Source: Mantamonas sphyraenae STR306
Taxonomy: Eukaryota > Protista > CRuMs
Assembly (NCBI GenBank): GCA_026936335.1
Contig: JAPMXV010000069.1
Span: forward strand, 186,001-250,000
DNA length: 64,000 bases
Direction: 5' to 3'
Part shown: positions 1-64,000 of the stretch, in pieces
Position numbering within the stretch: position 1 is the stretch's first letter
How the letters are laid out: each line of letters starts with the position of its first letter
Notes under the pieces: generated by a model
The model's database searches: none
What the model saw: only the letters and a program-made list of their open reading frames with translations
Told to the model about the DNA's origin: nothing
Translations under genes and position numbers: made by a program

Positions 1-7
1 GGCAGAG

Positions 8-1870
8 ATGGAAATGATGTACGAGGAGCGGCTGCAGGAACAAATGATCGCGGCGGACACGCGGCTGGACACCAAAATGTCGCTGTTTGCAGATCAACAG
101 CAGGCGGCAGCAACGTCGGAGGATCCGTACCTGCGTACGGCACACAACAACCTGAAGAAGCAGTATCAACTGGCGCAGGAGCGTGTGTACGCGCTGGAGA
201 AGCGAAACGAAACGCTGAGCGAAGAGCTGCAGGCGCGTGTGAATCTGGTGGCGCAGCAGGCGGCAGATTTGGCCAAGGAGAAAACGCGGTCGGCGAATGT
301 TGGAGCACAGTTGAAGCAGATGCGCGGGGCACTGGAGTCGATGACGGATCTGGAGACAAACCTGCGGCGGTCGCTGGAGAACGAGGCGAGGGTGAAACTG
401 AACCAGCAACGGAACGAGATTGCAGCGAATGCGCGGGAACAGGTGGCGGCGGTGGAGCACAAGTTGCGTGAGGAGAGGAAGAAGAACGCACAGCTGGAGG
501 AGACGTGCAAGAAGCTGCAGGCGCGTGTGACAAAGCTTGTGCAGTGGCAGCAGCACACACAGGAGCAAATCAGGACGATGCAGGAAAAGAACGGAAACCG
601 CAGCAAGACGGGCAAGAAGAAGAAGAAGGAAGACACAACGACATTCTTGCACGCACAGCCCAACGTGGCGTACGCGGACACGAGCCACAAGATCGAAATG
701 GGCAAGGAGAGCAAGGCAGGCGAGCTGCAGGACTTTCTGGATTCGCACGGATCGCCAAAGTTCAAGAAGTACCAGGCGCTGGCAGTGGATGCAAAGCGCA
801 ACAGCCAGGGCGGAGGGCAAAAGACCGTGAGCACGCTGTGGTCGGGAATGGTGGCGCCGTCGCCGTCGGGCAAGGGCTTTTCGGTGAGCTTTACGGACGT
901 GGAGAAGCTGGAAAAGGCGAGTGTGGAACCGAAGCGGATGACACGCGCTCGTGCACGTGCACTGAACATGAGCGGAAGCAAGGGCAGCAACAGCGCAGCT
1001 GGAAGAGACAAGGCCACAGCTGTATTTGGAGAGGAGGATGGAGGCAACGTGCGTGAAGAAAGGCAGAAGAAGGAGAACGAGCAGGGCGGGGAGCCGATGG
1101 AGGAATTCGACTCGTTGCAGGTGCACAAGGTGGACGTGGTGCGACGTGCAAAGCGAGCCGGAGTGCGTCCGCCGCGCAGCACACGCAAGCGCAGCAAGGA
1201 TGACGTGGAGGAAGTGGAGCGTGTGGAGATGGATGTGCGTGACGAGATCAAGCGCAGGCGTCTGGGGATGCAGGCACGACAGGCAGACCCAGTGATGGTG
1301 GTGGAAGAGGAAGAGGCGGGGTCCACGTCGTCCAAGGCGGCAAAGGGCAAGAAGGAGAGCAAGAAGGAGAGCAAGAGCAAGGCCAAGGGCAAGGGCATGT
1401 CGCTGGCACAGAGGTTGCTGCGGTCCGGAAAGAAGAAGAGCAAGAAGGAGGATGCGTACGCGTTTGACGAAGATGACGAGGAGGAGGAAGAAGAAGTGGA
1501 TGAGGAGGAGGAGAGGGTGGTGGAAGAAGAGGTGGTGGTGAACACGCGAGCAGCAGGTGGTAGCTCGGCGATGATGAGCGAGCTGGGAGCGGCGCTTCAA
1601 CGTCGCAAGGAGAAGCAGAACAAGGAGATGGAAGTAGAAGAGGCAGCAGAGGTGGTGGAGAAGAAGGTGGAAAAGAAGGTGGAAAAGAAGGTGGAGAAGA
1701 AGGAGGAGAAGAAGGAGGAGAAGAAGAAGAAGCGAAGGAAGCTGTTTGGAAGGAGCAAGAAGGTGGTGGTGGATGACGCAGACGAAGGAGAGGATGGAGA
1801 GGAGCGTGGAGAGAGTGTGGAGGCGAGTGCGTTGCCCATTGCACAGCGTCTCCGAGCTGGATTGGTGTGA
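8..1870 (+). CDS. Coiled-coil protein with K/E-rich disordered C-terminus, function unknown; probably 5'-truncated by the window
   Basis: 620-aa ORF open from the window edge, with G-ending codon bias like the other + strand genes. Heptad-like N-terminal ~190 aa and a short helix (MMSELGAALQRRK) near the C-terminus. Confidence 0.75.
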   Translation: MEMMYEERLQEQMIAADTRLDTKMSLFADQQQAAATSEDPYLRTAHNNLKKQYQLAQERVYALEKRNETLSEELQARVNLVAQQAADLAKEKTRSANVGAQLKQMRGALESMTDLETNLRRSLENEARVKLNQQRNEIAANAREQVAAVEHKLREERKKNAQLEETCKKLQARVTKLVQWQQHTQEQIRTMQEKNGNRSKTGKKKKKEDTTTFLHAQPNVAYADTSHKIEMGKESKAGELQDFLDSHGSPKFKKYQALAVDAKRNSQGGGQKTVSTLWSGMVAPSPSGKGFSVSFTDVEKLEKASVEPKRMTRARARALNMSGSKGSNSAAGRDKATAVFGEEDGGNVREERQKKENEQGGEPMEEFDSLQVHKVDVVRRAKRAGVRPPRSTRKRSKDDVEEVERVEMDVRDEIKRRRLGMQARQADPVMVVEEEEAGSTSSKAAKGKKESKKESKSKAKGKGMSLAQRLLRSGKKKSKKEDAYAFDEDDEEEEEEVDEEEERVVEEEVVVNTRAAGGSSAMMSELGAALQRRKEKQNKEMEVEEAAEVVEKKVEKKVEKKVEKKEEKKEEKKKKRRKLFGRSKKVVVDDADEGEDGEERGESVEASALPIAQRLRAGLV

Positions 1871-1904
1871 GAAGGGAGCAATGGATGCTTTCGTTTGGTT
1901 CACT

Positions 1905-5417: not shown

Positions 5418-5469
5418 GGTTTTGGAGGATGGGGTTGGCTGGGATTGGGCGTGGTGGGGTTCGGGGGTT

Positions 5470-8411: not shown

Positions 8412-8515
8412 GCGGTTCGGTGTTGGGGAAGCCGGGGCGTGAGTGTGTGTGTGACTGTATTGTTTTGGGATGAAGGAGGTGAGAGGATGAGAGGATGAGA
8501 TTGCACATGCCATGA

Positions 8516-9979: not shown

Positions 9980-10187
9980 GGCGGATTTTTGGGGGATGGT
10001 TGGGTGCAGGGGGGCGAGGGCGTGGGGATGGGAGAGGTTGGAGGGGGGTTGGGGGAGGCAGGAGAGGGGGAGGGGGGGACGGGAAGGGCGAGGGGGTTGA
10101 GGTGAGGTGGGATGGGATGGGATGAGGAGGCGTTGGATGGAAATCTGGGCGCAGACTCCTCCAAGGGAATTGCAAGAATTGCGTGCG

Positions 10188-15608: not shown

Positions 15609-15652
15609 GTGATGATGCGATTGTTGGGAACGGACTGTCCGCGCGAGGGGAT

Positions 15653-24845: not shown

Positions 24846-24971
24846 GTTGGTGCTGGACCAACGGGTGTGGTGGGAGGTTGGTTGGGTTGGGATGGGGAGG
24901 GAGGGCGAGGGGAACGGAGGAACAGGGGGAAGCGCTGGCGGGGCCATTTCTTTCCTCATTTTTGGGCATCC

Positions 24972-27852: not shown

Positions 27853-27944
27853 AGGGAGAGTAAGAGGAATGTAGGTGAGCATTGTGTGCCTCACTCACTG
27901 ACTTTCGCTAGCGGGGCCATATCTTTTCTCATTTTTGGGCATCC

Positions 27945-30825: not shown

Positions 30826-30917
30826 AGGGAGAGTAAGAGGAATGTAGGTGAGCATTGTGTGCCTCACTCACTGACTTTCGCTAGCGGGGCCATATCTTTT
30901 CTCATTTTTGGGCATCC

Positions 30918-33816: not shown

Positions 33817-33912
33817 AGGGAGAGCAAGAGGAATGTAGGTGAGCATTGTGTACCATATGGAAATCTCTGCCCTGCGCAGGTGGGGCCAACTCGGTGGGGG
33901 ACTGTGTGTGGG

Positions 33913-38260: not shown

Positions 38261-38323
38261 AGGGGGGGGGGAAGGGGAAGGGGAAGGGGAGAATGAAGGG
38301 CGCGTGTGGGGCCAACCTCGTCT

Positions 38324-38803
38324 ATGTCGAAGCGCGCGTCTCGGGCGGCAAAGGAACGGGTGACGTTGGGCCAGCCTGCGGCGGAGGAGGAGCTGGAGGC
38401 GCTGCTGGAGGCGCTGCGGGAGGGGGAGGAGATGTGGAGCGAGGAAGAGGTGCAAAAGGGCGGGGGCAAGTCGCTGGCAGACTCGCTGGCTGAGCTGCGG
38501 GCAGAAAACAGGAGCTTGACGGTGACGGTGAGGGACACGCAGCGTGTGTTGTTTTCGGTGGCGTTTGTGGCGCTGGTGGCGGCGTTTGCGGTGCAGGGGA
38601 TTGCGTTTGAAGCGCTTGTGGAGCGTGTGGGGGTGCAGGTGTTGCTGGTGTGTGATGTGGTGCTCGGGCTGTTGGCGGCATTTGTGGTAAAGGCAGGGCA
38701 CGGGGTGGTGAGGGCGTGGGTGGGCGTGGGTGGGATGGTGGCGGTGTATGGGGTGGTGGGTGCGGTGGTTGGAGGGGTGGTGATGGTGAGAGGGGGGGGG
38801 TGA
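38324..38803 (+). CDS. Small membrane protein (~3 TM), unknown
   Basis: 159-aa ORF with an acidic N-terminal half and a hydrophobic C-terminal half. GGGGCCAAC lies upstream. Confidence 0.6.
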   Translation: MSKRASRAAKERVTLGQPAAEEELEALLEALREGEEMWSEEEVQKGGGKSLADSLAELRAENRSLTVTVRDTQRVLFSVAFVALVAAFAVQGIAFEALVERVGVQVLLVCDVVLGLLAAFVVKAGHGVVRAWVGVGGMVAVYGVVGAVVGGVVMVRGGG

Positions 38804-39000
38804 TCAGGCACAGCACACTCCCGTTTCTCCATCGGATCGTCCAGCTTGAGTGTCACCCTGGCACACAGCCTCCTCACAACGGTGATGTCTCCCTCCGCGC
38901 CGCATCGACCGTGCGAGAGACTGGTTGGAATGGAAAACAGCGTCATGCATTGTACAACCCTATAACCCCCAAACCTCCACCTCCACCTCCAATCTTCCCA

Positions 39001-45000: not shown

Positions 45001-48000
45001 GCAGGTGAGCAGCAGACGACGCTTCATCTCGGTCAGCTGCAGCTCTGTGGGTTGCTGCCGCCAGTGCTCGAGGCTCATCACGTTGTACACGATGGCCTGC
45101 ACGTAGGAACTCCCAGACCACCCAAGGACGGCGTCGCTAGCATCCCAGTCCCTGCCCATGTTGCGACCGGTGGCCACGGACTGGAGGGTGGTGTTGCCCG
45201 GGCGGTGTGTTTTGGACGTCGCTTGGGCGTTGAACACACGCTGGAGCCACGCGCGCAGGGTTTGTTCGTTCTCGCGCATGGCTTTGTCCAGCATGTCTGT
45301 GTAGCGCAGCTGTTGTTTCTCAAACCGGTTGAGGAGCGGAGCTTGTTGGTGCCGTACGTCCTCCCTGTCCATGAGCATCAAGATGCGTGTGTCGTCGTGG
45401 ACGGGCACGTTGCTGTTGGATAGCTTGCCCATGGCGACGCGACACATGTTGCGCTGCTTGATGCGATGGTAGCTCTGGTTGAGGAGATCGTAGAGGGAGC
45501 CGAGGATCTCGTCCGCGTGTCGGATGACAATGGTGCTTCCCTGTTCCACAGCATGGATGATGTCACTGAGCAATTGGTAGTGCTGCCCGGGGCCACGGTC
45601 GCGGCGAAAGAGCGAGCCCCAGACGACGAGGTCGGGGTTGAGCGTTTCGAGCAAACTGAGACCGACGTCACCTTCGGAAATGACCATCATGTGCCTGGGC
45701 ATGCTTTTGTCGTTGAGATTGCTGTGGATCAGCTCCATGGTGTTTGTTTTGACCATTGGCCGGTCAAAGTTGCAGGAGCGCCAAAAGTCGCTGAGAAATC
45801 CGCTGTGCGGGCTTCCACCCAGGTTGCGTGCCACGGCCATGCTCACGACTTGTTCTTTTGTTTTGTGGCTGTCCTGCGTCCAGTCGTGTGCTGCAATATA
45901 CTTGACCATGGCGTAAAAGTCTCGCATGCCGTGAAAGTTTGCGACGCGCTCGTCCACGTGGCCGTGCTGGTCGCGCACGAGCTGGGCGCGGTCGACAAAC
46001 GTATGGCAGAGCTCTCGAAGTACGCTTTCGTGTTCAAGGGTGACGCGGTGATGGTCGTCGGCGCCGATGGCCTGCGAGGGGCCGGGGGTGTTTTCAAAGA
46101 TGACGATGGCGGTGTTGAGGAGGTCGTCCACGGTTGGGTCCGGGCGTGAGACGTGGATGCCCCTGTTCATCTTGCTCATGTCGAGGGACCAGTTGCTGAG
46201 GCCGACAAAAGCGACTTGAAGTTCGCCTTCGGGGGGCTCCAGGAGCGGGTGCAACACCTTGAGCGGGTTGCCTGGGGCGACTTCGGCGAGGCCGATCTCG
46301 TCGATCATCACGCAGGGCAGAATGTTCCTCTCGTCGCGCATGAGCGACTGCTCTTCATCCTTGGTGTCCCTGTGTTTGAGGCGCTTGAGGGCGTCGTGAA
46401 AGACGTCTTGGATGCCGTCCGAGGTGGAGGACTCTGAACCCTGGTAGGGAACCATGACGATGCTGTCCATGGAGGCGAGAAACGAGTGGGTACTGCCGTG
46501 CTGAGCCATGGAGGACATGTTGTCGTTGACAAGGCGCAGGGCAAGGGTTTTGCTGGTGCCGGGCTTGCCAACGAGAAAGAGCGGGATGCGGTTTTGCATG
46601 CAGACGACCATGACAAACACGTTTTCTTTCAACGCCTGGTTGAGCGCAGTGCCACGAGGTAGGGTTTGGGGAGCGAGGCAGGAGGCGTAAAAGTCGAGCT
46701 CTTTGTGCAGGAACTGAAGCAGTGTGTCAGGGTGGCGTGATTGCAGATGGGCCCACAGGGCCAGCAGTTGACTTCTGAGATCGTCTCGAGGGAGGCGGAA
46801 GTAGTAACAGACTGCCATGGCGAGGATGCGTGCTCTGAGTTGCTTGTCGCTCTCGGAGGAATAGGTGAGTGTTGTTGGATGGCCAGGGAGTGTGAAGCTG
46901 TGGAGAAACCAGCGGTAGAGGCCGACAAAGCGATTGATGTCACGGAGAGAGACGCTGCTGTGGGAAAAGTTGTCGCGAGAAAAGCGGTGTGCGGCCATGA
47001 GCTGGGCAGCCATCGTGTGTCGCTCACGATCGTGCTGGCATGGACAGTGGATGATCATGGAGTAGATGTACTTTTCCGTGTCTGGCTCTGTCAAGGAGCC
47101 AAAGTTCCAGGCGTAGGCCAAGAGGCTCTCGGGGAGTGGTTCGACGCGGTAGTCGAGGCGGAGGGCATCTTGCTGGTCGTCGCGGAGTTGCATGAGGCCC
47201 GCGGTGAGCATTTGCTGTTCCGGGTCGCAGATGCGATACGGGTTGCTTGCGGCCATGGGGATGACGTTTTCGTGCATGGATCGCCCGTGGACTTGGCGGT
47301 TGACAATGATGTCTGCCATGAGGCCACAGGCTGTGCTGGTGTTGAGCTCGTCGAAAAAGGCCCAGACGGTGGCACCGGTGTTGGTGGCCAGGGCCTCGCA
47401 TTGGAGGACAAAGTCGTGCACATGGGAAGGTTCTGTGCCTGCATGCACATTGAGGGTGCGAAATTCAATGCGATGTCGGGGTTGGTCATGTTGGGCGTCG
47501 TCGTCCTGCTCGTCCTCGTCAAGGCCTGGTGTGAATCGAGCCTGGCGCATCATTGCGGCGCGGTGGATGAGAGAGGTTTTGCCGACGCCTGTTTCGCCGA
47601 TGAGGACGATGGGAACGCCTGCGTCGAGGCGCTGTAGGAGGAGGGCCATTTTCAGACAGTTGTCTGCGGTGAGGGCGTAGGTGGCGCCGTTGCGGGAACG
47701 GTGGACGGCTTCGTAGAGGTTGTCGCGAGGTTGCTCATCGGGATGGACGCCAAAGAGATCGAAAAGGCGGTCCCAGAGGGTGCGCTCGTCGAGTTGTTGA
47801 AAGTCGGGCAAGATCTGGCGGGAGTCGTTGGCTCGTTGTTGCGTTTGCATGACAGCGCGGAGGCGAGTGACCCTGGTATCGTTTGGGTTGCGATACATGA
47901 TCTCTGGGGTGGTGTGGTCCATGTGAAAGAGGAGTTGAGTGTGGTCGCGTTCGCCGTCCCATGCCATGACCTGGCGTTGGATTTGTTGGACGTAGGCGTG

Positions 48001-51000
48001 GTCGGCATGGATGGGGCCGACGTTTTGGGTTTGCTCGACGATGATGAGGTCGTTGCCGCAGAACTCTTGGGCACAGTCGATGAGAATCTCGGCAAAAGCT
48101 TGCCGTGGGTTTTCGCGCACGTTCATGTGGCGAACAGAGGCTGGGTGGACAAAGCTGTTGAGGCAGAGGTGGCGCATCTGCTGGCTCAGGATGCTTACAA
48201 AGATGTGGAGCTGGCGGAAGGAGCGTGGCTGGTCGTTGAAAAAGTGGGTGAGGAGGAGCGCCTGCTTGGCTTGGTCGTCCCAGCCGTTGTCCGGGGTCCA
48301 CAGGGTGGGGTCCACATCGAGGTGAGGCTCGTCAAACTGGGGCACGATGTCGTCGAGGAGCATGGAGTGTGTGGTGAGGTGAAGCATCATGCAGAGGCGT
48401 TGGAGGTCTGGAATCTGGTCAAAGTCGACGTGTTGGACAATGGCGTCGGGATGCTGGGGGATGTCGATGCGGTGGGAGGGAAGGTTGCGAAGGAGGGGCA
48501 GAGCTTGCTTGAGATGCTCGGCGGGGGTGTTTGCGATCTCGAAAAAGATGCGTGCAAAGGGGAGTGCACGCACGTGGCCGCACTCGTCGCTGATGCTGTG
48601 GCAGAGGGCCATGCGGAAGCAAAACTGGTCGACAATGTAGGGGGGATCGCAGGAGTCGACATGAACGACGAGGGTGCTTTCGTCGTCGGGGATGAGAGAT
48701 TGGCAGGTGTGAAAGAGGGAGCGATGAGAGACCGGGCCTGAGAAATGGACGCGCTGGAAGGAGCCTGGGATGTTTTGTCGAATGAAAGTGGTCTTTCCGA
48801 CGCCTGAAACGTTGCTTGTGACGACGGTGGCGTGTGCGTCGTCGGGGAGAACATGGGAGGCGACCTGTTGGGCAATGTCGATGTGGACGGTGGGGTGGCG
48901 CTTGACGTCGGTGGCCTTGGTGACGCTCTCGAAAAGGGGCATGCCTTGGGCGAGAGAGGTGCACCAGATGAAGCCGAGACGGACGTGTTGATTGGGAGTG
49001 TGCATGACGAGGTCCATGAGGGTGTTGACGAGGTCTGTGGAGAGGGCCTCGAGGTGGCAGAGGCAGTGGAGGTGGTCGTCGGAGCTCTGGAGGGCATGCC
49101 GGACAAAGTTGACGACTGTTTCGCGCTGGCGGTCGCTGTCGGTGCAGACGAGGAGGTGCCTGGGACGCGGGGCATGTCCGGCGGCGCGGAACATGGTGAG
49201 GGCGGACGGGAGGACGAGGGTTTCGGATGGGACGACAAAGGCCTTTGGGCGTCCCGGGTGGACAAGAAATTCGTTTTTGTGAGGGTGGAGAGGGAGGGTG
49301 TCTGCGGGGAGGTCGCGCAGGAGAAGCATAAAGGCGGCGTGGAGAGAGCGGAGCTGGGCGTCGGGGGTGTCGGCGTGGGAGTCGTAGAGGTCGTAGAGGT
49401 GGCGGAGGGCAACGGCGGGGGATAGCTGGAGGGCATTTGCGTTGATCAAGGCGAGCATGTCGCGGAGGTGGAGAGGATCGAGAGAGGCGTGGGTGAGGGC
49501 GGCACAGGTTTGGAGGAGGGTGCGTGCGGGAAAGAGGTTGAGCTCGTTGAGGCGGTGATCTGTGCGGCAGCGGCGGAGGGTGGTGCGAAGGTGGTTGTCC
49601 TTTGCGTTGAGGTCGTCCTGGAGGTGGGTGAGAGACGGAGAGGGATCGACGTGCCAGTTTGGCTTGAGAAAGTCAGCATGGCCGAGGTTGCATAGGCTGT
49701 GGAGGGTGTCCTGGACGTCTACGAGTTGGTCGACGAGGTGGATGAAGGCTTGGAGGGAGAGGACTTCGTCGTGGGTGAGGGCGAGGGCGTTTTCGAGATC
49801 CTGGGGTTGGTCGGCGTCGGTGGTGGAGGGGGCGGGTTGTGCGATGGCGTCGTGCTGGTTGTTGGTGAGGAGGAGAGCGTACTGCCTGAGGTCGATGAGG
49901 TCCTGAAGCGGGTGCGGGGTGTCGTCGAGGTGGACAGAGATGTGGACGTCGTCAAAGTTGCCGTGGATGTGGACGTTGCCGTGATCGGCGATGTCCATCA
50001 TGCGCTGGCGCTTGACCTCTGATCCATCAACCATGTTGAGGTACATGGCCTTGAGGGCGTGGACGCAATCTGTGCACTCGCGCAGAGCGAGCTGGATCTT
50101 GGCGGAGCCGTTGTCGATGATGACATCGAGGAGGGAAGGCAGGCCGGCGTGGACAAAGTGGTCGCAATCGCGAAAGGAGCGGGGCAGGACGGTGAGGACG
50201 TGTCGGAAGGAGCGCAGAATGACCTGGAGGGCAGTGAGGGTGTTTGTGTTGAGGACGTTGGAGGCCTGGTCCTCCATGGAGCGGACCATGTGGCGGAGGT
50301 CCTCGTCGAGGGTGTCATGGACAAACTGCAAGGTTTCAGCAGACTGGCCAAGCTGGACGACGAGGTTCCAGTGCTGTTGGGTGAGGTCGCGGAGGAGGGG
50401 TGCTTGGGCAAAGTTGTCGCAGAGGCGCTGCAGGTCGGCGTGGTCGGATTGGACGGAAAGGTTGTTGAGGGTGTCGAGGAGGAGGGTTGCGGTGTCGTAG
50501 ACGTCGCCGCGTGGAGGGACGGCAAAGACGCCGTCGGCACGCCAGAGGATGGTGAGGCTTTGAAGCCGTTGCTTGGAGCGATCGAGGGAGGAGAGGGTTT
50601 GGATGAGGGGCAAGTGCGTGTTGTGGAGAGTGTCGACAAGGGGCTCTTCGATGCAGAGGGTGGCTAGGTGTGCACTGGAGTGAGGCGGGGTGTCGGAGGG
50701 AGGAAGGGTCCACTCTGTGTAGGATTCTGGGTCAAGTTGGGGCGGCGGGGCGTCCTGGTCGGCCTGGTCGGTTTGGTCGGCCTGGCGAGAGGCGAGGTAG
50801 CGTTGGATTGCGGGACCAATGTCATCGGTAGGCAACTGGCAGCCTTGCCAGAGCTGGAGCTCGAGGTAGGCGTTGATGGTGCAGCCAGGTGTGCCGTAGG
50901 CAAGCATGCGGGCGGTGACGTGGGCGAGGGCAGGCTGGACGACGAGAAGGGCGACGTGGCGGAGGGAGGTGGTGGAGGGGCCATTTTGGGGGTCGGTCGG

Positions 51001-53355
51001 GACGTGGGCGGCTGCGTAGAGGCGCATGACGTTGACGAGGGGCGGAAAGGTGCGCCAGGGGAGGATGTTGAGGGTGTAGGAGGCGAGCGTGTCCTTGGCG
51101 ACGTCGTTGCCCATGGATTGGATGGTGTGAAGGGTGTGGGTGTCCCAGGCGGCGAGGGAGTCTTTGAGGTCGGAGAGGCGGGCTTGGAGAGGCGGGCAGA
51201 CAACCTGAGCGTCGTGTGAGAGAAAGTGGAGGAGGGAGGTGTAGTCGTTGAGTTGGGTGTTGACATGGGTGGCGTGTTGGAGGATGGTGGCGAGGACGGT
51301 GGGTGTTTGGGAGGAGAAGGGAGGTGGGGAGTAGCGGGGGGATTGGGGAGGGGAGGAGGAGGGGGAGGAGTACGGGGAGGAGGCCGGGGAGGAGGCCGGG
51401 GAGGAGGCCGGGGAGGAGGCCGGGGAGGAGGCCGGGGAGGAGGCCGGGGAGGAGGTGTCGATGCCTGCGAGGCGGGTGATGCGTGTGTGCAGTTGGAGGA
51501 GGTGTTGCATGTTGGCGTCGAGCTCTGTGGCGAGAGCGTGGGTGCAGGTGCGTTGGTCGATGTCCTTGGCAAGGGAGTCGAGGTCGTCAAGGAGTTGGGT
51601 GAGGACGGAGGAGGTGGAGAGGGCAGCGGCAGGGAGGATGGAGTCGAGAAAGTCGAGGAGTTTGGAAAAGTGGAGGGCGCGGCGCCATGGGGCGTCGTGG
51701 CATGCGTCGAGGTCCATGCCGTGGTCGAGAATGTGGGCCATGACGTCAAATTCGTGGGGAGGTAGGGATTGGCGGCCTTGTGCACATGCACGGGCCATGC
51801 CGAGGCGGGTGGGGAGGTCAAAGCGGACTTGATGGGCGAGGCGTTGGCAAAGGACGTCGAGGAAGATGGGGAGGGTGACGGATTCTTGCTCCGAGAGGAT
51901 GAGCTGGGAGAGGGCGGCGAGGTCGCGGACGGAGATGTCCATGAGGAGCTTGCGTGCGTGGTCTTGGAGGATGTCGTTGGCAAAGTGAAGCATGTTGTAG
52001 GTGGTGAGGGTGCGGGTCAGAGAGTGGAGGTCGCGGATGGATTCTTGGGGGCCAGTGGATGGGGGTTGGTAGAGGCGCGCGCGGAGCATGTCGAGCCAGG
52101 CAGCCTGGAGTGGGTCTGAATCGCGGACACGGGCAAGAATGGCGTCGTCAAAGGCGATTTGGGGGAAGAACGGGTGCCATGTGTGTTGGAGGACTTTTTG
52201 CAGGGTGTGTTCGTCGGGAGGGCAGGCGTGAACGAGGTCAAGGAGGGCTTTGATCTCGTCGTGGGAGTCGATGCGAGAGAGGTGGCGGTGATCTGTGAGG
52301 ACAGAGAAGCACAGCTGGGAACAGATGTGTTTTCTGAGGTTGTTGTCGCTCGTGGAAGTGAAGGGGAGCCACTGCGACGGGGAGGTGAGGTGGGAGGTCA
52401 AGGCGGAGCGGAGGTCGCGCAAGGGCATGGAGGCAACGACGGGTTCAAAGCCTTGGAGGGCGACAAAGAGAGTGTCGTCGTCGCGAGAGTCCCACTTGAG
52501 GTGGCAGACGACAAGCTGGGTCTGGCCGGGCGAAGAGAAGGAGCCGAGGCATTTTGTCAGGAGTTGGCTGTGGGAATCTTGTGTCCATGAGCTCGTGTCA
52601 AAGCCAGCAGTTTTGAGGGCAATGAGGTCGTCGATGACGTTTGGGAGGGGGCCGACGCGGACGGCGTCGAGAAATTCGTCGGGGCTGCTGGAGGCGACCG
52701 GGAGGCAACGCAGCCATTGGGTGTTGGCAGCATACTTGACGGTGGTGTAGAGAATGTGGGCGCACTGGAGGACGGCCTCCTTGATGTGCTCGGGGAGGTC
52801 GAGGAGAGGGAGGCGTGCGAGATGGGTGCAGCAATGGACAAAGGTTGGTTGGAGGTCGTTGAGCTCGCCGTGGATGCACGCCATGCGTAGGATGAGGTAG
52901 GCGAGGATGGTTGGTTTGGGTTGTGGGTGGTGGGAGGGGTCCATCGGGACGTCGTCGAGGAGGTTGAGGGCTTTGGGGAGGTTCTTGTTGTCGGAGCGGA
53001 TGTGTGTGCACCAGGCATCGATGGCGTCCCATGCGTGGACGGCGGTGATTGCGTCGAGTGTGTAGAGTAGGAGGTAGGATCGCATGAACATGGAGGCGTG
53101 CATCTTGGCGGGGAGGCCTTTGGTGAGGCGGGTGAAGGATGCGGGGAGGTCAAGGAGGGTCGAGAGGATGTTTTGGGAGACGTTGTAGGTGAGGTGTGGG
53201 ATCGTGGTGATGGTGGTCACTTGGATGAGTTTGGTGGCGGTGAGGGTGCCGTTGGCGAGCGTGACGGTGATGGTGGCATAGAGGTTGCGATGGGAGAGGG
53301 ATGTCGGGAAAGGCGCGGCCCAGTGGCGTTTGGTGATGTGGATCGCCGGGTCGGA

Positions 53356-53388
<33 letters not shown>

Positions 53389-53640
53389 GGAGGAGGGGGA
53401 GGAGGGGGAGAAGGTACGGTGACGGTTTTGGATTTCGCAAAGGAGGGTGAGGAGGGGTTGGGACGGGAAATGGAGGCCGTCCTAGAGGGTGGGTGGGGTG
53501 GGGTGGGGGGGGGGGGGGGTGTTAGGGGGAGGATAAGGGGGGGAGAGGGGGGAGGAATAAGGGGGAGAGGGGGAAGGGGGAAGGGGGGGGAGGGGTGCGT
53601 ACCAGGGGGGGGTGTCGTGCGCGAGCTCGGTCGTGGACAT
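39001..53640 (-). CDS. RNF213/mysterin-like giant dynein-type AAA+ ATPase with RZ-like finger; probable intron 53482-53602, first exon uncertain
   Basis: Open frame 39001-53481. Motifs SGVGKT, VPIVLIGETGVGKT, FFDELNT, IPLFLVGKPGTSKT, IDEIGLAE, LKVLHPLLE, VGLSNWSLDMSKMNRG, LYDLLNQ and LLNRFEKQ. RZ-like YVVGNCG...CPWC...GG at ~41560-41750. Confidence 0.9.
51378..51455 (-). repeat. 12-bp coding minisatellite encoding (SSPA)n
   Basis: About six tandem GGAGGCCGGGGA units on the + strand. Confidence 0.9.
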
Positions 53641-53728
53641 GTTTTTTGGTGGACAGGGTGGCGCGTGGGTTGTGGTTGCCGGGACATTAGCGGGGCATTA
53701 TTAGTACAATATTGCACGGTTCATTTGG

Positions 53729-55787
53729 TCACGGGTTGGGAACAATGCTGATCTTGGACTTGACGCAGCTGACGGCGGGAAACCACGCGTCGTCGTCGAT
53801 GTTGTCGATGGTCAGAACGGGCTGCTTGTTTCGGAAGTACATCAACGTGTGGTTCTCGGCGTCCAGAGTGACCGTGATCGTGTCGCCTTGGTTGAAACGC
53901 GTGTAGTGGCTCGTGGCAGAGCCGTGTCGAAAGGTTCGCGCACCTTTGGCGTGCGTAAACCAGCTGTAGGAACCCTGGACCCCGCCTGTGGTGATAATTT
54001 GTGTTGTGTGTCAGTGTGCGTGCATGGGATGGGGTGGGGGGGGGGGCGATGACGTACCGACGCATGTGTTGGCGAGGTCACAGGAGGCGGTGCAGACGCC
54101 AATCAAGATGCTGGTGTTGACACGATCGATGCGCACGCTCCAGCTCTGCCCAGATCGCAGAGCGTCTTTGCCAATCCAAGTCGTCCATGCATGCTTGGAT
54201 TCCAGACTGCTCTCTGTAAACGTGCCCTTGCTGCAGTCAACCCGATCCCAATCCAGCGTCGGCATGTCGGCCTGGACCTTTCTCTCGACGCTGTGAATCA
54301 AATGCTCCCCCTGAATACGACGGCACATGTCCTCGAGTCCGCTCAACAGCACGGTCTTGTCCACGTGGCGCGTGTCCCACTTGCCATCGACTTTCATCCC
54401 GTACAGCCGTGTCGTGCTCAGCAGGCCAAAGCGCACACAGCCATACACACGCCTCTCCCACCCCTCCTCCTCCCCTGCCCCGTCGTGCTCCTTCACATAC
54501 GCCTCCACCACCTCCAGCACCTTGTCCTCGTGCGCCACGTTCAGGTCGTCCTCGCTCAGGATCTGCTCCACCACCCACACAGGCAGGGCAGACATTCCCA
54601 CCTCACGTGCGTCCATCAAATCGTCCAGTTTGCCTGCCACCCTGCCACACAGCCTCTCCACAACGTCTCCCTCCGCGCCTGTCGCCAGCGCCGCCTTGAG
54701 GAGCCCCATCTCCTCCTCGTGTTCCATCGCGTCAGCCAGCCCCTTCAAGTACACATACTCTTGCCACTCCACCATCTCGTCCACATCCACACTCTCCAGA
54801 TAGGCGCCCACGACGCGCGCTAGCTTCTCTGTCTCCATCGTGGCACCGTGCATCCGGATCGCTTCCTCCACCATCGCTGCAAACTCCCTCCCTCGCATGA
54901 AGCCAAAGTCCACTTTGTCCACTCCCGTGCACACTGCCTCGGCCACCGCATTCCATTCCTTTGCCACGCGAACCACCGCGGCGTGGTACACGTTGGAGTG
55001 CACCACGTCGGCCGACCCTTCTTGCCCCACCGCCTGTCCGCCACGGCACATCCGGACCAGTGTCCCTGCGTCGTGCGCCTCTCGTACCCAGCCCATCACA
55101 TGCTCCGTCAACATCGGCATCAACCAAAACTGAGCCACCGCCAGCAAGCCGTAGCACAGCTCAACATCGGCCACTGGAAGCGCACGCCCGTAGCACCATT
55201 CTACGGCCACTTCCATCGCACGCAGCACACCCACACTCTGCGTCCCACGCGCAACCACAACGCGCGGGAGCCCTGTCGAGTTTCCCCCCTGATCTGCGAG
55301 AATGCGAAAATCGCCCGGGTGTTCGTTCACCCCCATCAGGTACCGCCACCACCCACTGTGCAAGCACAGGAGTGCGGTGTGTGCACGGAGCACAACGTCT
55401 CCGTTTCCGTACGCGCTGCCTTCTGAAAATCGTGTCAGCGGGGCAGAACTTTCGCCAACATGTAGATTTGAGCAATTTTTCGCTCGCTTCCCACTCACCC
55501 GCCCCGTCGAGGCCCTCGAGCACAATCTCGACATCGACACACAGTCCAGTCTGGTACAAATCCGACCACAGCGATGTCACGGCCGGTCGTGCCTGTGGCT
55601 GTGCCTTTTCTTGCAAAGGCGAAAGGGGTCCGTACGCATCCGTCCTGCTCGTCGTGCTGACGTGCAAGTAGTGGTCGGGTGCTTCCGGTGACAAAAAATA
55701 TCCATGGTTGACACCAACGCCACTCTTTCCACTGCTGCTGCTGCTGTGGAAGCCAAAGGTCTTGTTGTTGGCTCGGGCGTCGGCCAT
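53729..55787 (-). CDS. BTB-BACK-SPRY protein (putative Cullin3 adaptor); introns 55423-55498 and 53986-54057
   Basis: BTB (DVEIVL..LRAHTALL) and BACK (ILSEDDLNVAHEDKVLE..CVRFGLL). The SPRY domain is completed by the last exon (FNQGDTITVTLD..WFPAVS). Both phase-1 GT-AG introns restore the frame. Confidence 0.85.
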
Positions 55788-57420
55788 GTTCGTGTCGGGT
55801 TGGGCGCGGCGCCGCGAGGCTTCTCGATCGCAGAGAAGGTGGGCTCGTACCGCTTGCAGGCGCCAGCCCGATCGAATCTCACTTGACCGTCGTCCTCTGC
55901 GTGACTACTTGTACATGTTGAATCGCACTGCTTGCATCTTGTCAGTCGTGTGTGGCTTGGCGAGCGGGTTTTGGAGCTGCGCGCGCCGATCACGCTACGC
56001 TACACCCGGCTGAATGCCCACAGTTGCACGGCACAGAGAGCAGCGGGAGTGCTGATTTGACAATGACTTGACAGTCGTATGGAGGTCTATGGTGAGCGTG
56101 GGGTCATCGAGCATGTTGCGTTGCAAAACACCGTCCGGTGAGGGCACAGATCGCAAGGTCGCGTGTTTACTGGTGTCGCAAGGTTCCAGGTGACGATCGT
56201 GGAAGTTGATGCCCGTGTTGCAAGTGGTGTGGTCAAACGAGTGTCAAACTGCGCAAGCATGGCGATCCTCCAGAGTGGACGCCGTTTTGCACTGCAAGCT
56301 CGCACAGGCAGAATCAACAGCCACGACACCACTTTCCAGCATCATCAGTTCCCTTTTTCTCTTCTGAGTCGGAAATTGGTGCTCATAAGGCGCATTGCCA
56401 ACGTTCAGGAGGGGATTTACGCACAAGATGCGAACGCTGGAACTTGTGAGATGCGCAAAAGCCAGGAGGTTGGATGAAGCCAGTGTGTGTATGTGATGAT
56501 GGAGGGGGTGGGAACGGTGTTCATTCAAGATGTGGTGCAACATTGATGGAAAACCGGCCACGGAAGCTGGCCGTCCACTTCCCACACAACCCGCTGTCCA
56601 ATCCGACACCCATTCGCAGCCATCCACTCTCCAGGCAGCTCCGTCTCCGCCGTGCGCAGAATGGGAAGCACCAGTTGGTTGACAGATCCTCCTCCCACAG
56701 CAGGTTCAGCAGCACATCCGCCCTTTTCAAACTCACTCCCGCCGAGAGGTCCATCAGACTCGCATGCGGCCTTCCCACCTCCTCCGTCAGCGCATCAGCC
56801 CACTGCACCAGCCCATGGTGCCCCACCCCCCCCCCCCTCCTCAATCTGAAGACCTTTGTTCAGCCCTTGCACCTGCCCTCCGCTCACAAACCCGACCATC
56901 AGCTTGGCCAGCCGCACAGGGTTAGGGGAGGGGGGGAGGGGGGGAGGGGGGTCGCCAGCCACCCTGCCAGGAGGGAGTTGTGGTGTGGTGGCGGGCGAGT
57001 GTGGCGAAGAATGAAAGATCCGCCCGCTCTTGCTCGGGGACGGGGTCCATGTTCGCTTCCGTGACTCCATGGTCAAGGTTGAATCCGCACAGGCCAGCCA
57101 TGAGGTGCATTTGGTCAACATGAGTGTTCACGACGATTGCATGCGTCCTTCGATGTCCAGTCCTGCGCTGTGTTGGCTCGGCTTGTGTGCAACGGGTGGC
57201 CACGGTCATTGCTGGCGACATGGCCAGGAAGCACTGGGATCGATTGGCCAACATGGACACAGACAAGGTCAAGGAGTACGCTCTGGCACAAACGATGCAA
57301 GGTACAATCTGCACCTGGCTGGCGATCCCGATCTCCTCGACCAGGCGGACTCCACGGTACACAAGACAACTTGGAATCTGAGGAGTGGTTGAGGCTTCTG
57401 TACTGTACATTGGAGAGTGG

Positions 57421-60400
57421 CTAGAATGGAGTCAGCTCAATCTCGTTTGGAGGAGGAGTGGGGTGGGGCGTGGTGTGGAGGGCGCGGACGAGGTGGAGGA
57501 CGGCCGAGTCTGGATTCTGTGCGACGTGTGCCGTCCATTCAGCGAGGAGTTCTTCGTCGAGGAAGCGTCGTCCACGTCGGATGTCATGGGCGTGGGGCGC
57601 TTGGCGAGAGGCGCGGATGGCGTCGATGTCTGCGGTGATGTCGAGCATCTGCTTGTCGGAGAGGGCGTTGCGTGCGAGTTGCTCGAGTTTGCGGTGATGG
57701 TCGGGGTGGAGGAGGAGGGTTGCGTTGTGGATAAACTTTTGGCGGAGGCCGCGGTCATCGCCGATGGCAATCAAGGCCATGTCACGCTTGCTTTGGACGG
57801 CTTGCCAAAGGTCGAGGGCGATGTAGGCAAGGCAGGCGAGGAGGACGGTTGCAGCGACCATGAGGGTGATCCAGGTCCACGCCGGGCTGTCTTGGGTGCT
57901 GCGTGTGGCAAAGACCATGCCGGCAATGAGGAGGAGGAGGCTCTCGACAAGGAGGAGGCTCTCGAGGGTGTTTTGGGCAGATGTGCGGTACGGACGGTAG
58001 ACGGCCTGGACATAGGTGGCAGCCCCGAGTACGAGGATGGCCATGAGGCCCTGGAGGGCAGGGGTGGCAGTGGCAAAGAGCTTGAGGGCGACGACGGCGC
58101 CCTTGCGGAGGAGGACGACGGCCTCAAAGAAGTACAACGAGGTGGAGTACTTGTTGAAGAGGGTGGAGTACTTTTGAAGAAACTGGGGCTGGAGGCGGCG
58201 CTCTGGGTTTTGTGCCGAGAGCATGATGGCAAGCACGGTAGCGGGGATGCCGAGGACAAAGAGGACGAGAAAGAGGATGGCGGGGCCGAGGATGCGTTCG
58301 TGTGAGCCTCCAGGGACCCAGCAGGAGACGGAGGGTTCGACATCAAGGACAAAGTGGCCGGGTTGGAGCTCGGTGCAGTCAAAGGCCTCGAGGACGCGGG
58401 TGGAGAGGGGAATGTAGAGGAGGACGAGGGAAAAGAGCATCTCGTTGACCATGTGGCGGAGGGTGTCTTGGTCGACGATCTCGGACTCGGTGAAGAGGGT
58501 GGAGAGGCTGTGGCGCAGGTAGGAAAAGAGGAAGGATGTGCGCGGGAGGGACGGGTCCGGCGGGGCACAGAAGCGCGGGTGGGCGGCGTGGAAAGCGGCG
58601 CCGTGATGGAGGACCCAGGAGGCGCGGAGAAACTGGCCGAGGACACGGAGGAGGATGCCGAGGGCGAGGAGGAGGGGCAGGGTCATGGTGAGCCAGAAGC
58701 GTGTGTTGAAGGTCCACTGGTTGGCGAGGGAGCATTCTGGGGCGGCGGTTTCGAGATTGAAGTTGGCCAAGGAAAAGTAGTTGAGGAGAGACTGGACCTG
58801 AGGGGGCCAGTCGAGGCGGTAGTGGCCAAATGTGCTCATGACCTGGAGGTGTGTGAGGGCGATGGCGGTCATGCGGCCGGTGGACTTTGCGCCGGAGCGG
58901 ACTTGGCGCTTGACGAAAAAGAGGTAGAGGACAAAGAGGAGGATGAGGAGGGCGATGGTGGCGCCGGAACCGTCTTGGCATGGCTGGCAGGTGGGGCCGA
59001 GCTTGAAATAGCCCTGGTGGCAGAGGGCGCACATGGGGCCGTAGTAGCCCGGGGCGCAAGCGTTGGTGATGTTTGTGGAGCCTCCGAGGCAGGCGGAAGG
59101 GACGGGGCAGGGGAGAAAGCGGAGCTGGGGGCCTGTGCCCACAGCAAAGTAGCCGGGGCGGGCGATGGGAGGTGTGGTGCGACCGGGGCAGGTGGCTTGG
59201 GCGGGACAGGGGAGACAGGGGCGGCCTGGGAGGGCGTCTGGATGGTAGAAGCGAAAGAGACACTGGCAGTGGTCGAGGGTGGTGGCTGGCTGGAGGACAG
59301 GCTCTGTGTTGGCGGGACAGGAGAGGGGCTCTGCGAGGACGGTGAAGAAGAGTTGGGAGGGGTGAAACTGCTGTCCGTTGAGGCTGATTTCGACGAGGTG
59401 CTGGCCCAGTGGGAGGGAGGAGTTGACGGTGAGGCGGATGGAGGTGTTTGTGAGGGCGTCGGGGACGATGGGCGGGTTGTTTTGTCCGAGGCGGACGAGG
59501 ACGTGACCGGTGTCGAGAAAGTTTGCGCCGGTGAGGAGGAGCTGGACGGTGTCGTCGGGTGTTTTCCTGGGAGGAGTGAGGGAGGCGAGGGTGGGTGGAG
59601 GGTAGAGGGTGAGGGAGTGGCCCGAGTCGAGCCAGTCGATTCCGTTGAGGGCGACGAGGACGCGTGCCTGAACGGGGAGGGAGGTGGAGGCGTTGTAGGC
59701 GGGGGTGGTTGCGGAGAGGGTGGTTGGGGCGAGTGTGGCGGAGACGGAGGGAGAGGATTGGAGGCGGAGGCGTGGGAGCTCGGAGAGGGCGGTGACAAAG
59801 GAGCCGGTGAGGGTGATGCGGGTGGCGCCTGAAAAGGGCATGGCGGGGGGGTGGATGGAGGTAAAGGTGGGAGTCGGGTAGAGACGGAGGGAGACAGAGT
59901 CTGTGGACCAGGAGTGGCCGCTGTTTGTGGTGACAGAGACGGGGAGGTCGGCAAAGGCGGCGGGCGGGAGGTTGGGAAAGGCGTGGAGGAGGGAGGGGAG
60001 GTGGAGGACGAGGGGCGGGTTTGTGGCGTTGAGGATGACGGGTGGGTTTGTGTGGAGGCGTAGGCGTAGGGAGGCGTGTACGTGGGGAGGGTCGAGGAGG
60101 TTGGATCCGGCGATTGTGATGGGGGTGCCACCGGCGAGATGTGCGCTGGTGGGGGTGGTAGAGGTGAGAGAGGGGCTGAGGGCAAGGAGGGTGGGGGGAG
60201 TGGCGGTGGAGAATTCGAGGCCGTTGTTGAGGGAGACCTGGACGGCGGCGGTGGTGACGGGAAGGGCGGGAGAGGTGCAGTGGAGGGTGGTGGGGGTTGC
60301 AAAGGAGCAGGGTGCGTGGGCGCCGTTGAAGGAGGCAAGGAGGCCCGGCGTTTGAAGGAAGCCTGTGCCAAAGAGGGTGAGGGGCACGGGGAGGCCAGCG

Positions 60401-63400
60401 GGGATGCGGTCGAGGCTGAGGGCAGAGACGCGGACGGGGCTGTGGTAGAGGAAGGAGCCTGCGGGGAACCAGTCTAGGGCGTTGAGGGCGACCCAGAGGG
60501 ATGCGGTGTGGGGCGGTTGGATGGAGGAGGGCAAGGCGGGCGTGGATGGGAGGATGAGGTTGTCGGGGGGAAGGAGGGTGGCGTCGAGGATTTGGCTGTG
60601 CCATTGGGAGGAGTTGAGCTTGATCTTTGGGTTTGCGGCGGAGGCGAGGTTTGGGTAGGCGCCTGTGATGGTGAGTTGGGTGCCGCCTGCGTGGGAGCCT
60701 AGGGCAGGGGAGGAGTGGTTGAAGGTGGGTGTGGCGTAGACGCGGAGGGAGTGAGTGGTTGTGGTCCAGGATGCGGCGCGATTGATGGAGACTTGGATGG
60801 GGACGTCTGTGAAGGGGGTGTGTGGCGGGAGGGTTGCGGTGAGGTCGGGCACCGGGAGGACGAGGGATGCGGTGGCGTTGAGGAGGACGGGTGGGTTGTG
60901 TGTTGAAGCGGACGCGGAGGGAGTGGTGGACGTCGATTAGGTTGATGCCGGAGAGGGTGAGGGGCGTGCCTCCGGCGATGTGTGCGCTGGACGGGTTGAG
61001 GGCAAGGAGGAGCGGGCGGAGGGTTTGGATGGGAATGGGGGCGGAGAGCTGGGTGGAGCGCATCTGGCCGTTGAGGGCGAGAAGGACGTCGTGGGTGCCT
61101 GCGGGGAGGGCGGGGAGGATGCAGTGGATGGCAGAGGCGTTGAGAAAGGTGGCGGGTACGTCTGTGCTGCCAAAGCGGACGGTGAGGTGGGGGGTGTGGA
61201 GAAAGCCGTGGCCGAGAAGGGTGACCGGGAGCGGGAGGAGCTCGGGAAGGAGGGTGGGGTGGAGGGCGTGGAGGACGGGGAGGGGCGAGACATGGAGTGG
61301 GAGCGGGTGGGTAAAGGAGAGGCCGCCGTTTGTGGTGAGTTGGACCGAGGTGGCTGCGGCGGGTGTGGTGCAGCGGAGCTGGGTGGAGGAGAGGAATTGG
61401 GCCGGGAGGGTGAGGGCGTTGGCAAAGCGGCACTGTAGGTGTGGGCCGGTGTTGTTGAAGCCGGAGCCGGTGAGGGTGAGGAGGGTGTCTCCTGTGGAGG
61501 GGGACCAGGTGGGAGAGAGGGAGTCGAGGGAAAAGACGGAGAAGGGCAGGGGCGGGTGGGTGTAGTGCTGGCCGTCGAGGGCGAGAGAGAGGTAGGCTGT
61601 GCCGGTGGCGTTGATGGCGGGGAGGGAGGTGTGTATGGATGCGCCTGGGGGCTGCCAGGTGGCCGGGAGGGTGATTTGGAGGCCAGAGGGGGTGGTGAGG
61701 CGGACGCGGAGGTCTGGGCCGGTGTCGGGAAAGGAGGAGGAGGTGGCGGGGAGGAGGGTGAGGGTGGGGGTGGGGATGGCGATGGGGAGGGATTGGGGGG
61801 AGAGGGCGGAGAGGGGTTGCGGGGCGTAGTAGCGGAGGGTGAGGTTTGTGGGGAGGAAGTTGTAGGAGTTTGGGGCGAAGCGGAGGGTGGCGAGGGCGGG
61901 GGTGCCTTGGGGGAGGGGGGGGTTGAGAAGGAGAGGGGGTGGGGGAAGGGGGGGTTAGGGTGAGGGTGGTGGTGGTGGTGGTGGTGGTGATGGTGAGGGT
62001 GATGGGGTCGTAGGTGGAGGTGGGTGGGAGGCCGGAGGTGATGAGTGTGATGAGGGTGCCGCCGGTGTCGGGAGAGCTGGACGGGGAGATGGCGGTGAGG
62101 GAGGCGTTGTACGGGGTAAAGAGGGTGGCGGGGGAGGTGTGCCACTGCTGGCCGTCGAGGCTGATGGCGACGGGGAGGGGGGTCAGAGGGAGGTCGGGCG
62201 GGGTCATGCAGGTGATGTTGTGGGTGGAGAGGTGGAGGACGGTGGCGAGGAGGGAGCCGATGCGGCAGCGGGGTGTGGGGAAGGGTGGCGGGAGGTTTGT
62301 GGGGAGGTAGTGGGCTTGGAGGGTGACGGGTGTGCCGCCTTGGTAGGGGCCGGAGGTGAGGTTGAAGCGAGGGAGGAGGGTGGAAAAGAGGGTGAGGGTG
62401 GGCGGGGTGTAGGTGGGCTGGGCGAGGAGGGTGGGGATGGAGACGGAGACGTTGCCGAGGGCGTCGGGGATGGGGGGAGTGGAGCAGTTGAGTTGGGTGG
62501 AGGAGAGGGTGACGCAGGCGAGGGCCGGGTAGTGGCGTGCGTTTGCGTGGAAGACGGGGATGTGGGTGGCGTTGAAGTTTGCGCCGCGGATGTCGAGCCA
62601 GGTGCCGCCTGTGTTTGGGGCGAGGGGAGGGTAGAGGGAGTGGAGGTAGGGAAAGGTGGGGTTGCAGGTGGTCTGGCCGGGGAGGAGGTTGAGGGTGGGC
62701 TGGGGGCAGGAGAGGCAGGAGGTGGCGTTGGCGGTGGTGGAGTAGGTGTGGACGGGGCACGGGGGGCAGGCTTGGAGGGGAGGAGGCGGGCTCGGGGGTT
62801 GGTCAAGGGGCGGGGAGTACTGGCCCGGAGAGCAGGCGTCGTTGGGTTTTGTGCGGAGGAGGAGGGCGTCGTAGGAGCCAATGGAGGCTTGGGAGAAGAG
62901 GTTGCTGGTGTAGCCGACGGCATACGGGAGGAGGAGGGCGTCGAGGGCGACGGATTGGAGCTGGTCGTCGCCAGAGGTGCCAAACTGGTGGATGCGTAGG
63001 ACGGCGCCGGTGGCAAAGTCGAGCTTGAGGATGAGAAAGTCGTTGTTGCCAAGGGGTTGGGAGCCGAGGGAGCCGGCGGAGCTGCCGACGACGTAGAGGA
63101 CGGAGTCGTCGGGGGCGAGGGCGAGGTCGTGTGGTTCGTCGGTGCTTGTGGTGCCGAGCATGGTGGTCCAGAGGCGTGTGCGAGAGGTTGTGTTCCAGCG
63201 TGTGACGAGGATGTCTTTGGCGGCGGCAAAGGGCTGGGCGTCGACGGAGGAGGTGGAGGAGCCGCAGAGGACGAGGTCGCCGGTGAGGCGGGAAATGTCC
63301 ATGGCTTGGGAGGTGTCGACGGCGGAGCCACCCCACTGGGCGGCCCATATTTGTTGGCCGTTGGTGGTGTTGAAGGCGAGGAGGACGTAGTCGTCCTGGC

Positions 63401-64000
63401 CGAGGTGGGGGCCGTAGAGAGAGCCGGATGTGTGGGCAAAGAGGTAGGCGATGTGGGGGTCGGTGGGGTGGGGCTGGAGGGCAGAGGGGATGACGGAGAT
63501 GGACGGGGCGCCGACAAGGACGAGGTAGAGCTGGGAGGCGTTTGTGGGGTCGAGGGCGGCGATGAAGAGGCGGCGGTCGCCGGGGTTGGGGTAGCCGGGA
63601 AAGGCGCCGGTGGAGTCGCCGGCGACGAGGATGCGGGAGGCGTCCGAGGTGAAGGCGGCGGCGCGTGCAAAGTCGTTGCTGGAGGAGCCGATGCGCGCGG
63701 AGAAGGCGAGGGTGGAGTTTGGGTGGAAGGCGAGGATGAGGGCGTCGTTGTCTGTGGAGCCGCCGAGGGCGGTGTAGGAGGAGGTGGAGCCGGTGAAGTA
63801 GGCAGAGAGGAGGATGAGAGGGGGGGAGGAGAGGGGAGGAGGAGGGGGGAGAGAGGGAGAGGGAGGTGGGGATGGTGGAGGAGGAGGCGGTGCCGCCGAG
63901 TTGTTGGGTCCAGAGAGGGGCGCCGGTGGCGTTCCAGGCGATTAGGAAGAGGTCGTTGTTGCTGGAGCGGGTGAATGGGGGGAGGGAGGAGCGGGTGGTG
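57421..64000 (-). CDS. Giant surface protein: beta-propeller repeats, Cys-rich modules, many IPT/TIG domains, C-terminal multi-pass TM domain; 5' end outside window; frame breaks at ~60895, ~61900 and possibly ~63820
   Basis: Propeller repeats (YVVGSSAGSL..NDFLILK). Repeated IPT motifs (GGTxxTxxG, VSLNGQ), CPAQATCPG and CAPGYYGPMCALC. About 8 TM segments with YFFEAVVLLRK and YRPY. Confidence 0.8.

Follow-up and report, generated by a model that had tools for sequence, protein, structure and literature searches.

What makes one strand of a nuclear chromosome G-rich over tens of kilobases, whichever strand its genes lie on, and then C-rich within a few bases? The question is raised by a 64,000-bp stretch of the genome of Mantamonas sphyraenae STR306 (contig JAPMXV010000069.1, here C69, of assembly GCA_026936335.1). 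We call this stretch the window; its positions 1–64,000 are C69:186,001–250,000, and skew was read over C69:1–260,000. The published genome is a diploid FALCON assembly of 25.06 Mb in 78 contigs with mostly single-exon genes (PMC10492846). The assembly totals 25,061,354 bases with TTAGGG ends, and C69 bears telomere repeats at its left and right ends. Genes were called by a self-trained hidden Markov model rather than taken from a curated annotation; for other contigs the evidence consists of match positions, and the sequence itself was read for C69:1–260 kb. We find a skew locked to the chromosome strand that is probably a footprint of replication, whichever sense the leading strand has. In our preferred reading, to which we give a probability of about 0.5, the leading strand is rich in C, and both the G-to-C steps and the ends of chromosomes hold fixed origins.

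A first-pass annotation of the window had described the + strand as G-rich over 1–38.8 kb regardless of coding strand. The 1-kb skew is indeed positive throughout this interval, and the seven line counts quoted in support were all exact on recount. The claim that codon endings follow the chromosome rather than the gene also stands: over 1–38.8 kb, + strand skew at four-fold degenerate sites is +0.675 in + strand genes (1,992 sites) and +0.723 in − strand genes (2,429 sites), and gaps that contain introns have an excess of G in + genes and of C in − genes. Because the skew persists when four-fold sites are split by gene strand, the check that the annotation had proposed, gene orientation is not its source. 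The skew is thus present at near-neutral sites of three kinds (four-fold, intronic and intergenic), and over C69:1–260 kb its sign in non-coding DNA is the same as at four-fold sites. Across these 260 kb, neighbouring genes on opposite strands agree in four-fold skew (r = 0.69), and on the coding strand it averages −0.015, so the skew is locked to the chromosome strand. Its spread in 100-site blocks (standard deviation 0.47) is 4.5 times that of shuffles (0.10, maximum 0.12), and GC content rises with the absolute skew. Genes show no preference for one skew strand (21:19). Gene strands are intermixed (48 + and 55 − genes), which rules out polycistronic units of the kinetoplastid type. Genes add a weak signal of their own: their coding strand has a slight excess of G at the start (+0.13) and an excess of C (−0.26) over the final 150 bp together with the 3′ flank. 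The amplitude, which had been called unusually large for a nuclear genome, is so: raw jumps reach 64–109 points between 1-kb flanks, and four-fold skew reaches ±0.9.

Within the window the skew forms plateaus, steps and one ramp, set among the following features (window coordinates).

1–38,808, + strand: G-rich plateau, four-fold skew +0.70 on either coding strand; it extends leftward beyond the window, falling to about 0 by C69:~150 kb.
38,799–38,813, no strand: G-to-C step 1, change point 38,808 (likelihood ratio 113–173), located between two convergent genes; a candidate origin, or else a terminus.
38,828–38,901, + strand: 74-bp remnant of a BTB/BACK–SPRY family (80% identity), beginning 20 bp right of step 1.
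39,001–53,220, − strand: giant open reading frame of 4,739 amino acids with central AAA/dynein-like P-loop domains, which holds the smooth ramp.
39,045–48,600, + strand: linear four-fold ramp from −0.28 to +0.88 over about 9.6 kb, followed by a plateau; candidate fork-meeting zone.
53,340–53,620, + strand: G-tracts (GGA runs, G-runs and one TTAGGG) immediately left of step 2.
53,660–54,137, no strand: G-to-C step 2, in two stages (+0.9 to 0 to −0.5) with change points at ~53.7–53.8 kb and 54,119.
53,744–55,540, − strand: BTB/BACK gene with a 3′ exon resembling SPRY; + strand four-fold skew −0.47.
55,541–57,400, no strand: non-coding or decayed multi-copy fragments with skew of about 0; the G-rich plateau resumes at 56.9–57.4 kb.
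57,401–64,000, + strand: G-rich plateau (+0.89) over a − strand TIG-domain gene, terminating 478 bp past the window at C69:250,478.

Abrupt flips had been reported at ~38.8 kb and ~54 kb, and 1-kb windows show them at ~38.8 and ~54.1 kb. Misassembly, which could have produced the first, is ruled out by single Illumina unitigs that cross it (37,009–39,085, two runs, from the same study as the assembly and therefore not fully independent). Bridging by unitigs was shown for step 1; the continuity of the ramp rests on one open frame. Of the two climbs that had been described, that of 39–51 kb is borne out, but that of 54–64 kb is not: it resolves into an island followed by a plateau of +0.89 from 57.4 kb, with the raw 1-kb skew reaching +0.7 at 61–62 kb. 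The island is a C-rich to neutral interval of about 3 kb made of multi-copy genes between plateaus of +0.9, with skew of −0.47 at 54.1–55.4 kb and about 0 in the non-coding 55.5–57.3 kb.

The ramp lies inside one gene. For the skew of the giant frame, a linear ramp-to-plateau model gains 25 log-likelihood units over a single step. The frame, which by resemblance alone we take to be RNF213-like, has one paralogue in the genome (a 4,973-amino-acid frame on contig C45), and the 38% amino acid identity of this sole paralogue rules out gene conversion with it as the cause of the ramp. Codon choice and amino acid composition drift with the skew along the frame.

Further along C69, four-fold skew is −0.73 at 7.5–14 kb, −0.65 at 20.6–28.5 kb and about 0 at 100–117 and 132–150 kb, then +0.70 at 186–224.8 kb, +0.89 at 243–250 kb and −0.25 past 250.5 kb. 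The five strongest steps on a 600-bp scale (C69:325, 7,350, 224,800, 239,825 and 250,475) all run from G to C, and four of them are in non-coding DNA; the largest is that at C69:250,478, or ~64.5 kb in the window frame. Steps above 0.7 are downward in five of seven cases across the 260 kb, and the increments are negatively skewed (p = 0.007). The two large up-steps fall at the edge of a 99.6% identical inverted duplicate (C69:14.1 kb) and at the end of the 54–57 kb island. The large steps are mostly of one sign, and between them lie a single clean ramp, an island and long plateaus. The earlier proposal of origins ~15 kb apart does not hold as a rule: the window is a local cluster of strong steps, others gather toward the left end, and over most of the contig the steps are weak. 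No tRNA gene lies at a step anywhere in C69:1–260 kb, and we found no shared motif, end-element remnant or hairpin at the internal C69 steps. The inverted repeat itself (C69:14,085–22,551) has 1.9-kb gene-bearing arms and a 4.6-kb spacer, and the spacer has a skew of about 0 within a −0.7 domain, as if flipping or holding a switch.

Chromosome ends provide a second view of the polarity. As a marker we used the strand of short G-run words, which agrees with local skew in ~80–100% of cases on C69; the matches listed (for the third word, those up to contig 45) collapse to 198 markers, and the marker counts that follow hold among these matches. Of the 26 markers that lie within 30 kb of a telomere-confirmed end, 25 run 5′ to 3′ toward that end, and within 50 kb 32 of 36 are on the strand that points to the telomere (p = 2 × 10−6). 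Beyond 50 kb the orientation is even (24 of 47 toward the telomere, that is, 24:23). Internal switches from + to − markers occur on 19 of 62 contigs. Since the G-rich strand points to telomeres, a C-rich leading strand requires an origin at every chromosome end.

A candidate for such an origin adjoins the telomere. At the left end of C69, the only end at which skew was read, the 140 bp beside the repeats are G-rich on the + strand (+0.85) and are followed by −0.83, with the switch at C69:325; the skew is thus not monotonic up to the telomere repeats but reversed over the last ~140 bp. The switch lies in a telomere-adjoining element (positions 187–520 at this end) of at least 330 bp that recurs in fixed orientation and with 91–95% identity at no fewer than 40 ends (40 listed of 166 candidates). 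Because the switch-bearing stretch belongs to an element common to at least 40 ends, each of these ends would have a step in the direction of those inside the chromosome. The element may be an origin, a promoter or a telomere element. The reversed outer 140 bp cannot plausibly have been copied by an inward fork starting inside the ~190-bp telomere. As to leading-strand identity, the telomere polarity favours a G-rich leading strand unless origins lie at the ends, and the switch in the terminal element favours a C-rich one.

Away from C69, tRNA genes often occur as inverted pairs 0.4–13 kb apart (on C31, C32, C34 (twice), C35, C42, C49, C52, C54, C60, C61, C62, C67 and C70), and G-run markers switch from + to − across such pairs on C34, C35 and C52. 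These pairs are candidate centromere-like or flip-flop islands.

The base composition constrains the mutations involved. On the G-rich strand, four-fold sites hold G at 0.62–0.70, C at 0.09–0.13, A at 0.11–0.15 and T at 0.09; where skew is nil the shares are about 0.36 G, 0.37 C, 0.14 A and 0.13 T. On the G-rich strand, C thus gives way to G, T is slightly lost and A is unchanged (T − A = −0.02 to −0.06). The four-fold purine share ranges from 0.19 to 0.77, without the excess of T over A expected of transition-driven deamination. Strand-symmetric transversion rates would force T above A together with G above C, yet T − A is slightly negative. Given equilibrium and weak selection, the skew thus calls for transversions at rates that differ between the strands, chiefly C to G on the G-rich one. 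Non-coding DNA shows no TpC preference (contexts with a preceding T shift least), and the four-fold signal is mixed. Plain cytosine deamination and an APOBEC-type motif were accordingly rejected, with neither a T excess nor a TpC context. Among differences between duplicated segments, C/G changes make up ~16% of neutral ones and are not dominant, and in a gene that is triplicated in the window the G-rich strand shows five C-to-G against no G-to-C changes, a sample too small to carry weight. The genome encodes three Y-family polymerases, all ordinary. The bias reaches proteins: from C-rich to G-rich strand, proline falls from 5.6 to 2.8% and histidine from 4.0 to 1.9%, and glutamate rises from 4.0 to 9.5% and valine from 6.1 to 9.8%.

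A sharp step is the mark of sharp initiation or of sharp termination, and the two readings are mirror images. If initiation is the sharp event, as the first-pass annotation had inferred, forks would start at fixed G-to-C steps (38.8 kb, ~54 kb, C69:250.5 kb and C69:7.35 kb) and also in the conserved element ~140 bp from every telomere; all of these are candidate origins read from the skew. Step size would imply origin efficiencies of roughly 0.5–0.75. The nascent leading strand would gain C, as in yeast but about ten times more strongly, and forks would meet at variable places, often inside long genes, leaving ramps. The window would be a cluster of strong origins from which leftward forks copy ~60–80 kb one way. 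A C-rich leading strand puts the sharp events mostly in intergenic DNA and the diffuse ones in long genes. Speculatively, C may be placed opposite template pyrimidines, either when a Rev1-type activity inserts dCMP at abasic sites or when C:C and C:T mispairs are poorly repaired; such C insertion would fit the spectrum but leaves the identity of the leading strand unfixed. A toy model with ten point origins and 21 parameters tracks ~165–245 kb of C69 (overall R2 of 0.67), as a check of sufficiency only. We hold more tentatively the complete version, in which fixed origins do most of the copying and one of them resides in a universal element at the side of every telomere, ends fire inward and a C/G-transversion mutator is so strong that fork direction sets codon and amino acid usage; we think it somewhat doubtful as a whole.

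Several observations weigh against fixed origins with a C-rich leading strand. Without terminal origins, the telomere polarity yields the opposite leading strand, and the terminal element is one homogenised sequence, hence one evolutionary sample, perhaps selected for another function. Most gene junctions carry small positive steps (+0.31 at convergent and +0.19 at divergent ones), which fit termination at the steps or an effect of transcription. The internal steps lack a common motif or hairpin. The steps at 54 and 64.5 kb border multi-copy families and may therefore be, in part, edges of rearrangements; of the origin candidates, that at 54 kb is the one we trust least, because multi-copy pieces make up the island and step 1 adjoins a fragment of the same family. 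The block right of C69:250.5 kb, which lies 70 kb from the right telomere, is a subtelomeric LRR-family array oriented as at left ends. The toy model fits poorly at C69:58–72 kb despite its 21 parameters. Finally, C goes with T on one strand in Mantamonas, and with A on the leading strand of yeast.

The best-surviving alternative reverses the leading strand. Here the leading strand would be the G-rich one, replication would start at scattered sites, forks would travel outward to the telomeres, and a G-to-C step would mark a fixed site of termination, a barrier or the relic of a chromosome end; cytosine lesions on the exposed lagging-strand template would end as G. This accounts for the telomere-ward G-rich strand (25 of 26 and 32 of 36 markers) without a terminal origin, as Encephalitozoon ends have been interpreted (PMC4704409), and the weak up-steps at most intergenic gaps and the marker switches that straddle inverted tRNA pairs on C34, C35 and C52 agree with it. 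An old end-to-end fusion at C69:250.45 kb would be an example of a relic end. About 280 bp of degenerate TTGGG/TTAGGG-like repeats on the + strand (C69:250,180–250,450) end at the largest step, and the LRR array to its right has the orientation of 11 of 11 left-end loci, with 6 of 6 right-end loci opposite; this junction is possibly an old fusion or inversion, yet the conserved end element is absent from it. Such a scheme also needs two-way barriers sharp to ~15 bp, at steps with neither a tRNA gene nor a common motif on C69, and dense initiation inside a 14-kb gene, and it leaves the reversed last 140 bp at the ends inexplicable as a mutational record. We think it unlikely, although it is the most serious competitor.

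Rather less probable is that the steps in the window are the edges of moved or inverted segments still short of local equilibrium, laid over an arm-scale replication skew, and are neither origins nor termini. Sequence of dispersed families does lie right of all three steps, the inverted duplicate at C69:14.1–16.0 kb creates a sharp step in just this way, and the 54–57 kb feature is island-shaped. An insertion, however, yields a box and not a 9.6-kb linear ramp in a gene without a close paralogue, and equal numbers of sharp up- and down-steps would be expected. The BTB/BACK gene belongs to a dispersed family of at least 11 copies at 67–72% nucleotide identity, and even the nearest BACK copies are thus old enough for turnover at silent sites. 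Copies of this family near left ends (C73, C76 and C77) share one orientation and right-half copies (C11, C69 and probably C75) have the other; the copy in the window opposes the skew of its own arm.

We rank next, as improbable too, a non-replicative process to which steps are like DNA ends, in which recurrent resected breaks, or break-induced replication, would leave exposed the strand with its 3′ end toward the break or telomere, and this strand would lose C. It would give telomeres and internal steps one geometry, the amplitude peaks beside steps, the steps lie among fast-evolving multi-copy genes, and the 74% skew jump of the Candida albicans centromere has been argued to be non-replicative (PMC3459929). 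But to keep plateaus of at least 40 kb at +0.7, exposure would have to be very long and almost constant; neither TpC nor any other deaminase context is seen, and the terminal 140-bp reversal is unexplained. We give practically no credence to a transcription-coupled gradient along genes (C-rich 5′, G-rich 3′), as in unicellular fungi (PMC3315797): the giant frame alone runs that way and steps 1 and 2 coincide with the ends of genes, but the skew keeps its sign when the gene strand flips, and the mean residual inside genes is slight and runs against the fungal pattern (+0.13 at starts, −0.26 at ends). Gene orientation or a 5′–3′ transcription gradient as the main cause on C69 is thereby refuted.

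How does this skew compare with known systems? In human N-domains the jumps are upward, of the opposite sign, the scale is megabases (against 7–100 kb in Mantamonas) and the amplitude is far smaller. N-domains nevertheless share with Mantamonas sharp jumps linked by linear ramps, which have been read as fork-polarity gradients, skew being proportional to fork polarity (PMC3320577). In Saccharomyces cerevisiae, Kluyveromyces lactis and C. albicans, GC skew rises along inter-origin intervals and the leading strand is C-rich (Marsolier-Kergoat, PMC3459929). Mantamonas resembles these three yeasts in its G-to-C step, its rising ramp and the presence of both at third codon positions and in intergenic DNA, with origins inferred from the skew, and on our preferred reading also in its C-rich leading strand. 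A difference is that the base that accompanies C is A on the yeast leading strand and T in Mantamonas. The S. cerevisiae jump is 9%, averaged in 10-kb windows and seen only through such averaging (PMC3459929), against single raw jumps of 64–109 points between 1-kb flanks here, a comparison that is not strictly like for like.

The ends have parallels of their own. In Encephalitozoon cuniculi, G enrichment from core to telomere spans tens of kilobases at all ends, independently of gene content, as in Mantamonas, and its authors infer outward forks from the subtelomeric G-skew (PMC4704409); its cores are without such domains, whereas Mantamonas has strong internal steps and the reversed last ~140 bp. 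The yeast core X element, a few hundred bp long, adjoins the telomere at all ends and carries the ARS consensus sequence, ACS (PMC11042809). The Mantamonas terminal element is alike in size, place and sharing among ends; no sequence relation is expected, and its putative origin role is read from the skew switch. The C. albicans centromere, where the GC-skew jump is 74% and has been argued to be non-replicative (PMC3459929, PMC2924309), shares a very large local jump and a GC content raised with the absolute skew. That jump is upward, occurs once per chromosome and decays within ~3 kb; those of Mantamonas are downward, occur several times per contig and bound domains of 10–100 kb. We found no published account of nuclear skew in Mantamonas among the four hits of a search; a broader search returned mostly mitochondrial papers, and the genome paper (PMC10492846) does not contain the word skew. 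The novelty is the amplitude; the kind, a probable replication skew like that of yeast, is known, and here it is about ten times stronger than in yeast.

Two further genes of the window lie on the first plateau.

16,836–18,827: intact leishmanolysin-family (Peptidase M8) gene with a TIG domain.
24,933–33,854: Patched/sterol-sensing-domain gene in tandem triplication, the copies 98–99% identical.

Near the first are genes that we take, from Pfam hits or recognition, to be ELP2-like, TRM1-like, RPA49-like and subtilase-like. In the triplicated gene, skew is about 0 in the 5′ non-coding parts and +0.7 in the coding parts. TpA is strongly depleted across the window (observed/expected 0.31) and CpG is not (0.96).

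In other nuclear genomes that we checked, replication skew is faint (9% jumps in budding yeast) and origins there are unreadable from sequence. The spectrum in Mantamonas, made up of C/G transversions without an excess of T, suggests a pathway of replication error or lesion bypass rather than textbook deamination. The skew also imposes a position-dependent compositional bias on the proteins of a taxon that is used for deep eukaryote phylogeny. Mantamonas, from a CRuMs lineage near the root of Amorphea, opens to direct test where origins lie, how efficient they are and where forks meet, and so has a bearing on the question whether origins in early eukaryotes were fixed. If the reading with fixed origins is true, the origin map of a deep-branching eukaryote would be readable directly from its sequence.

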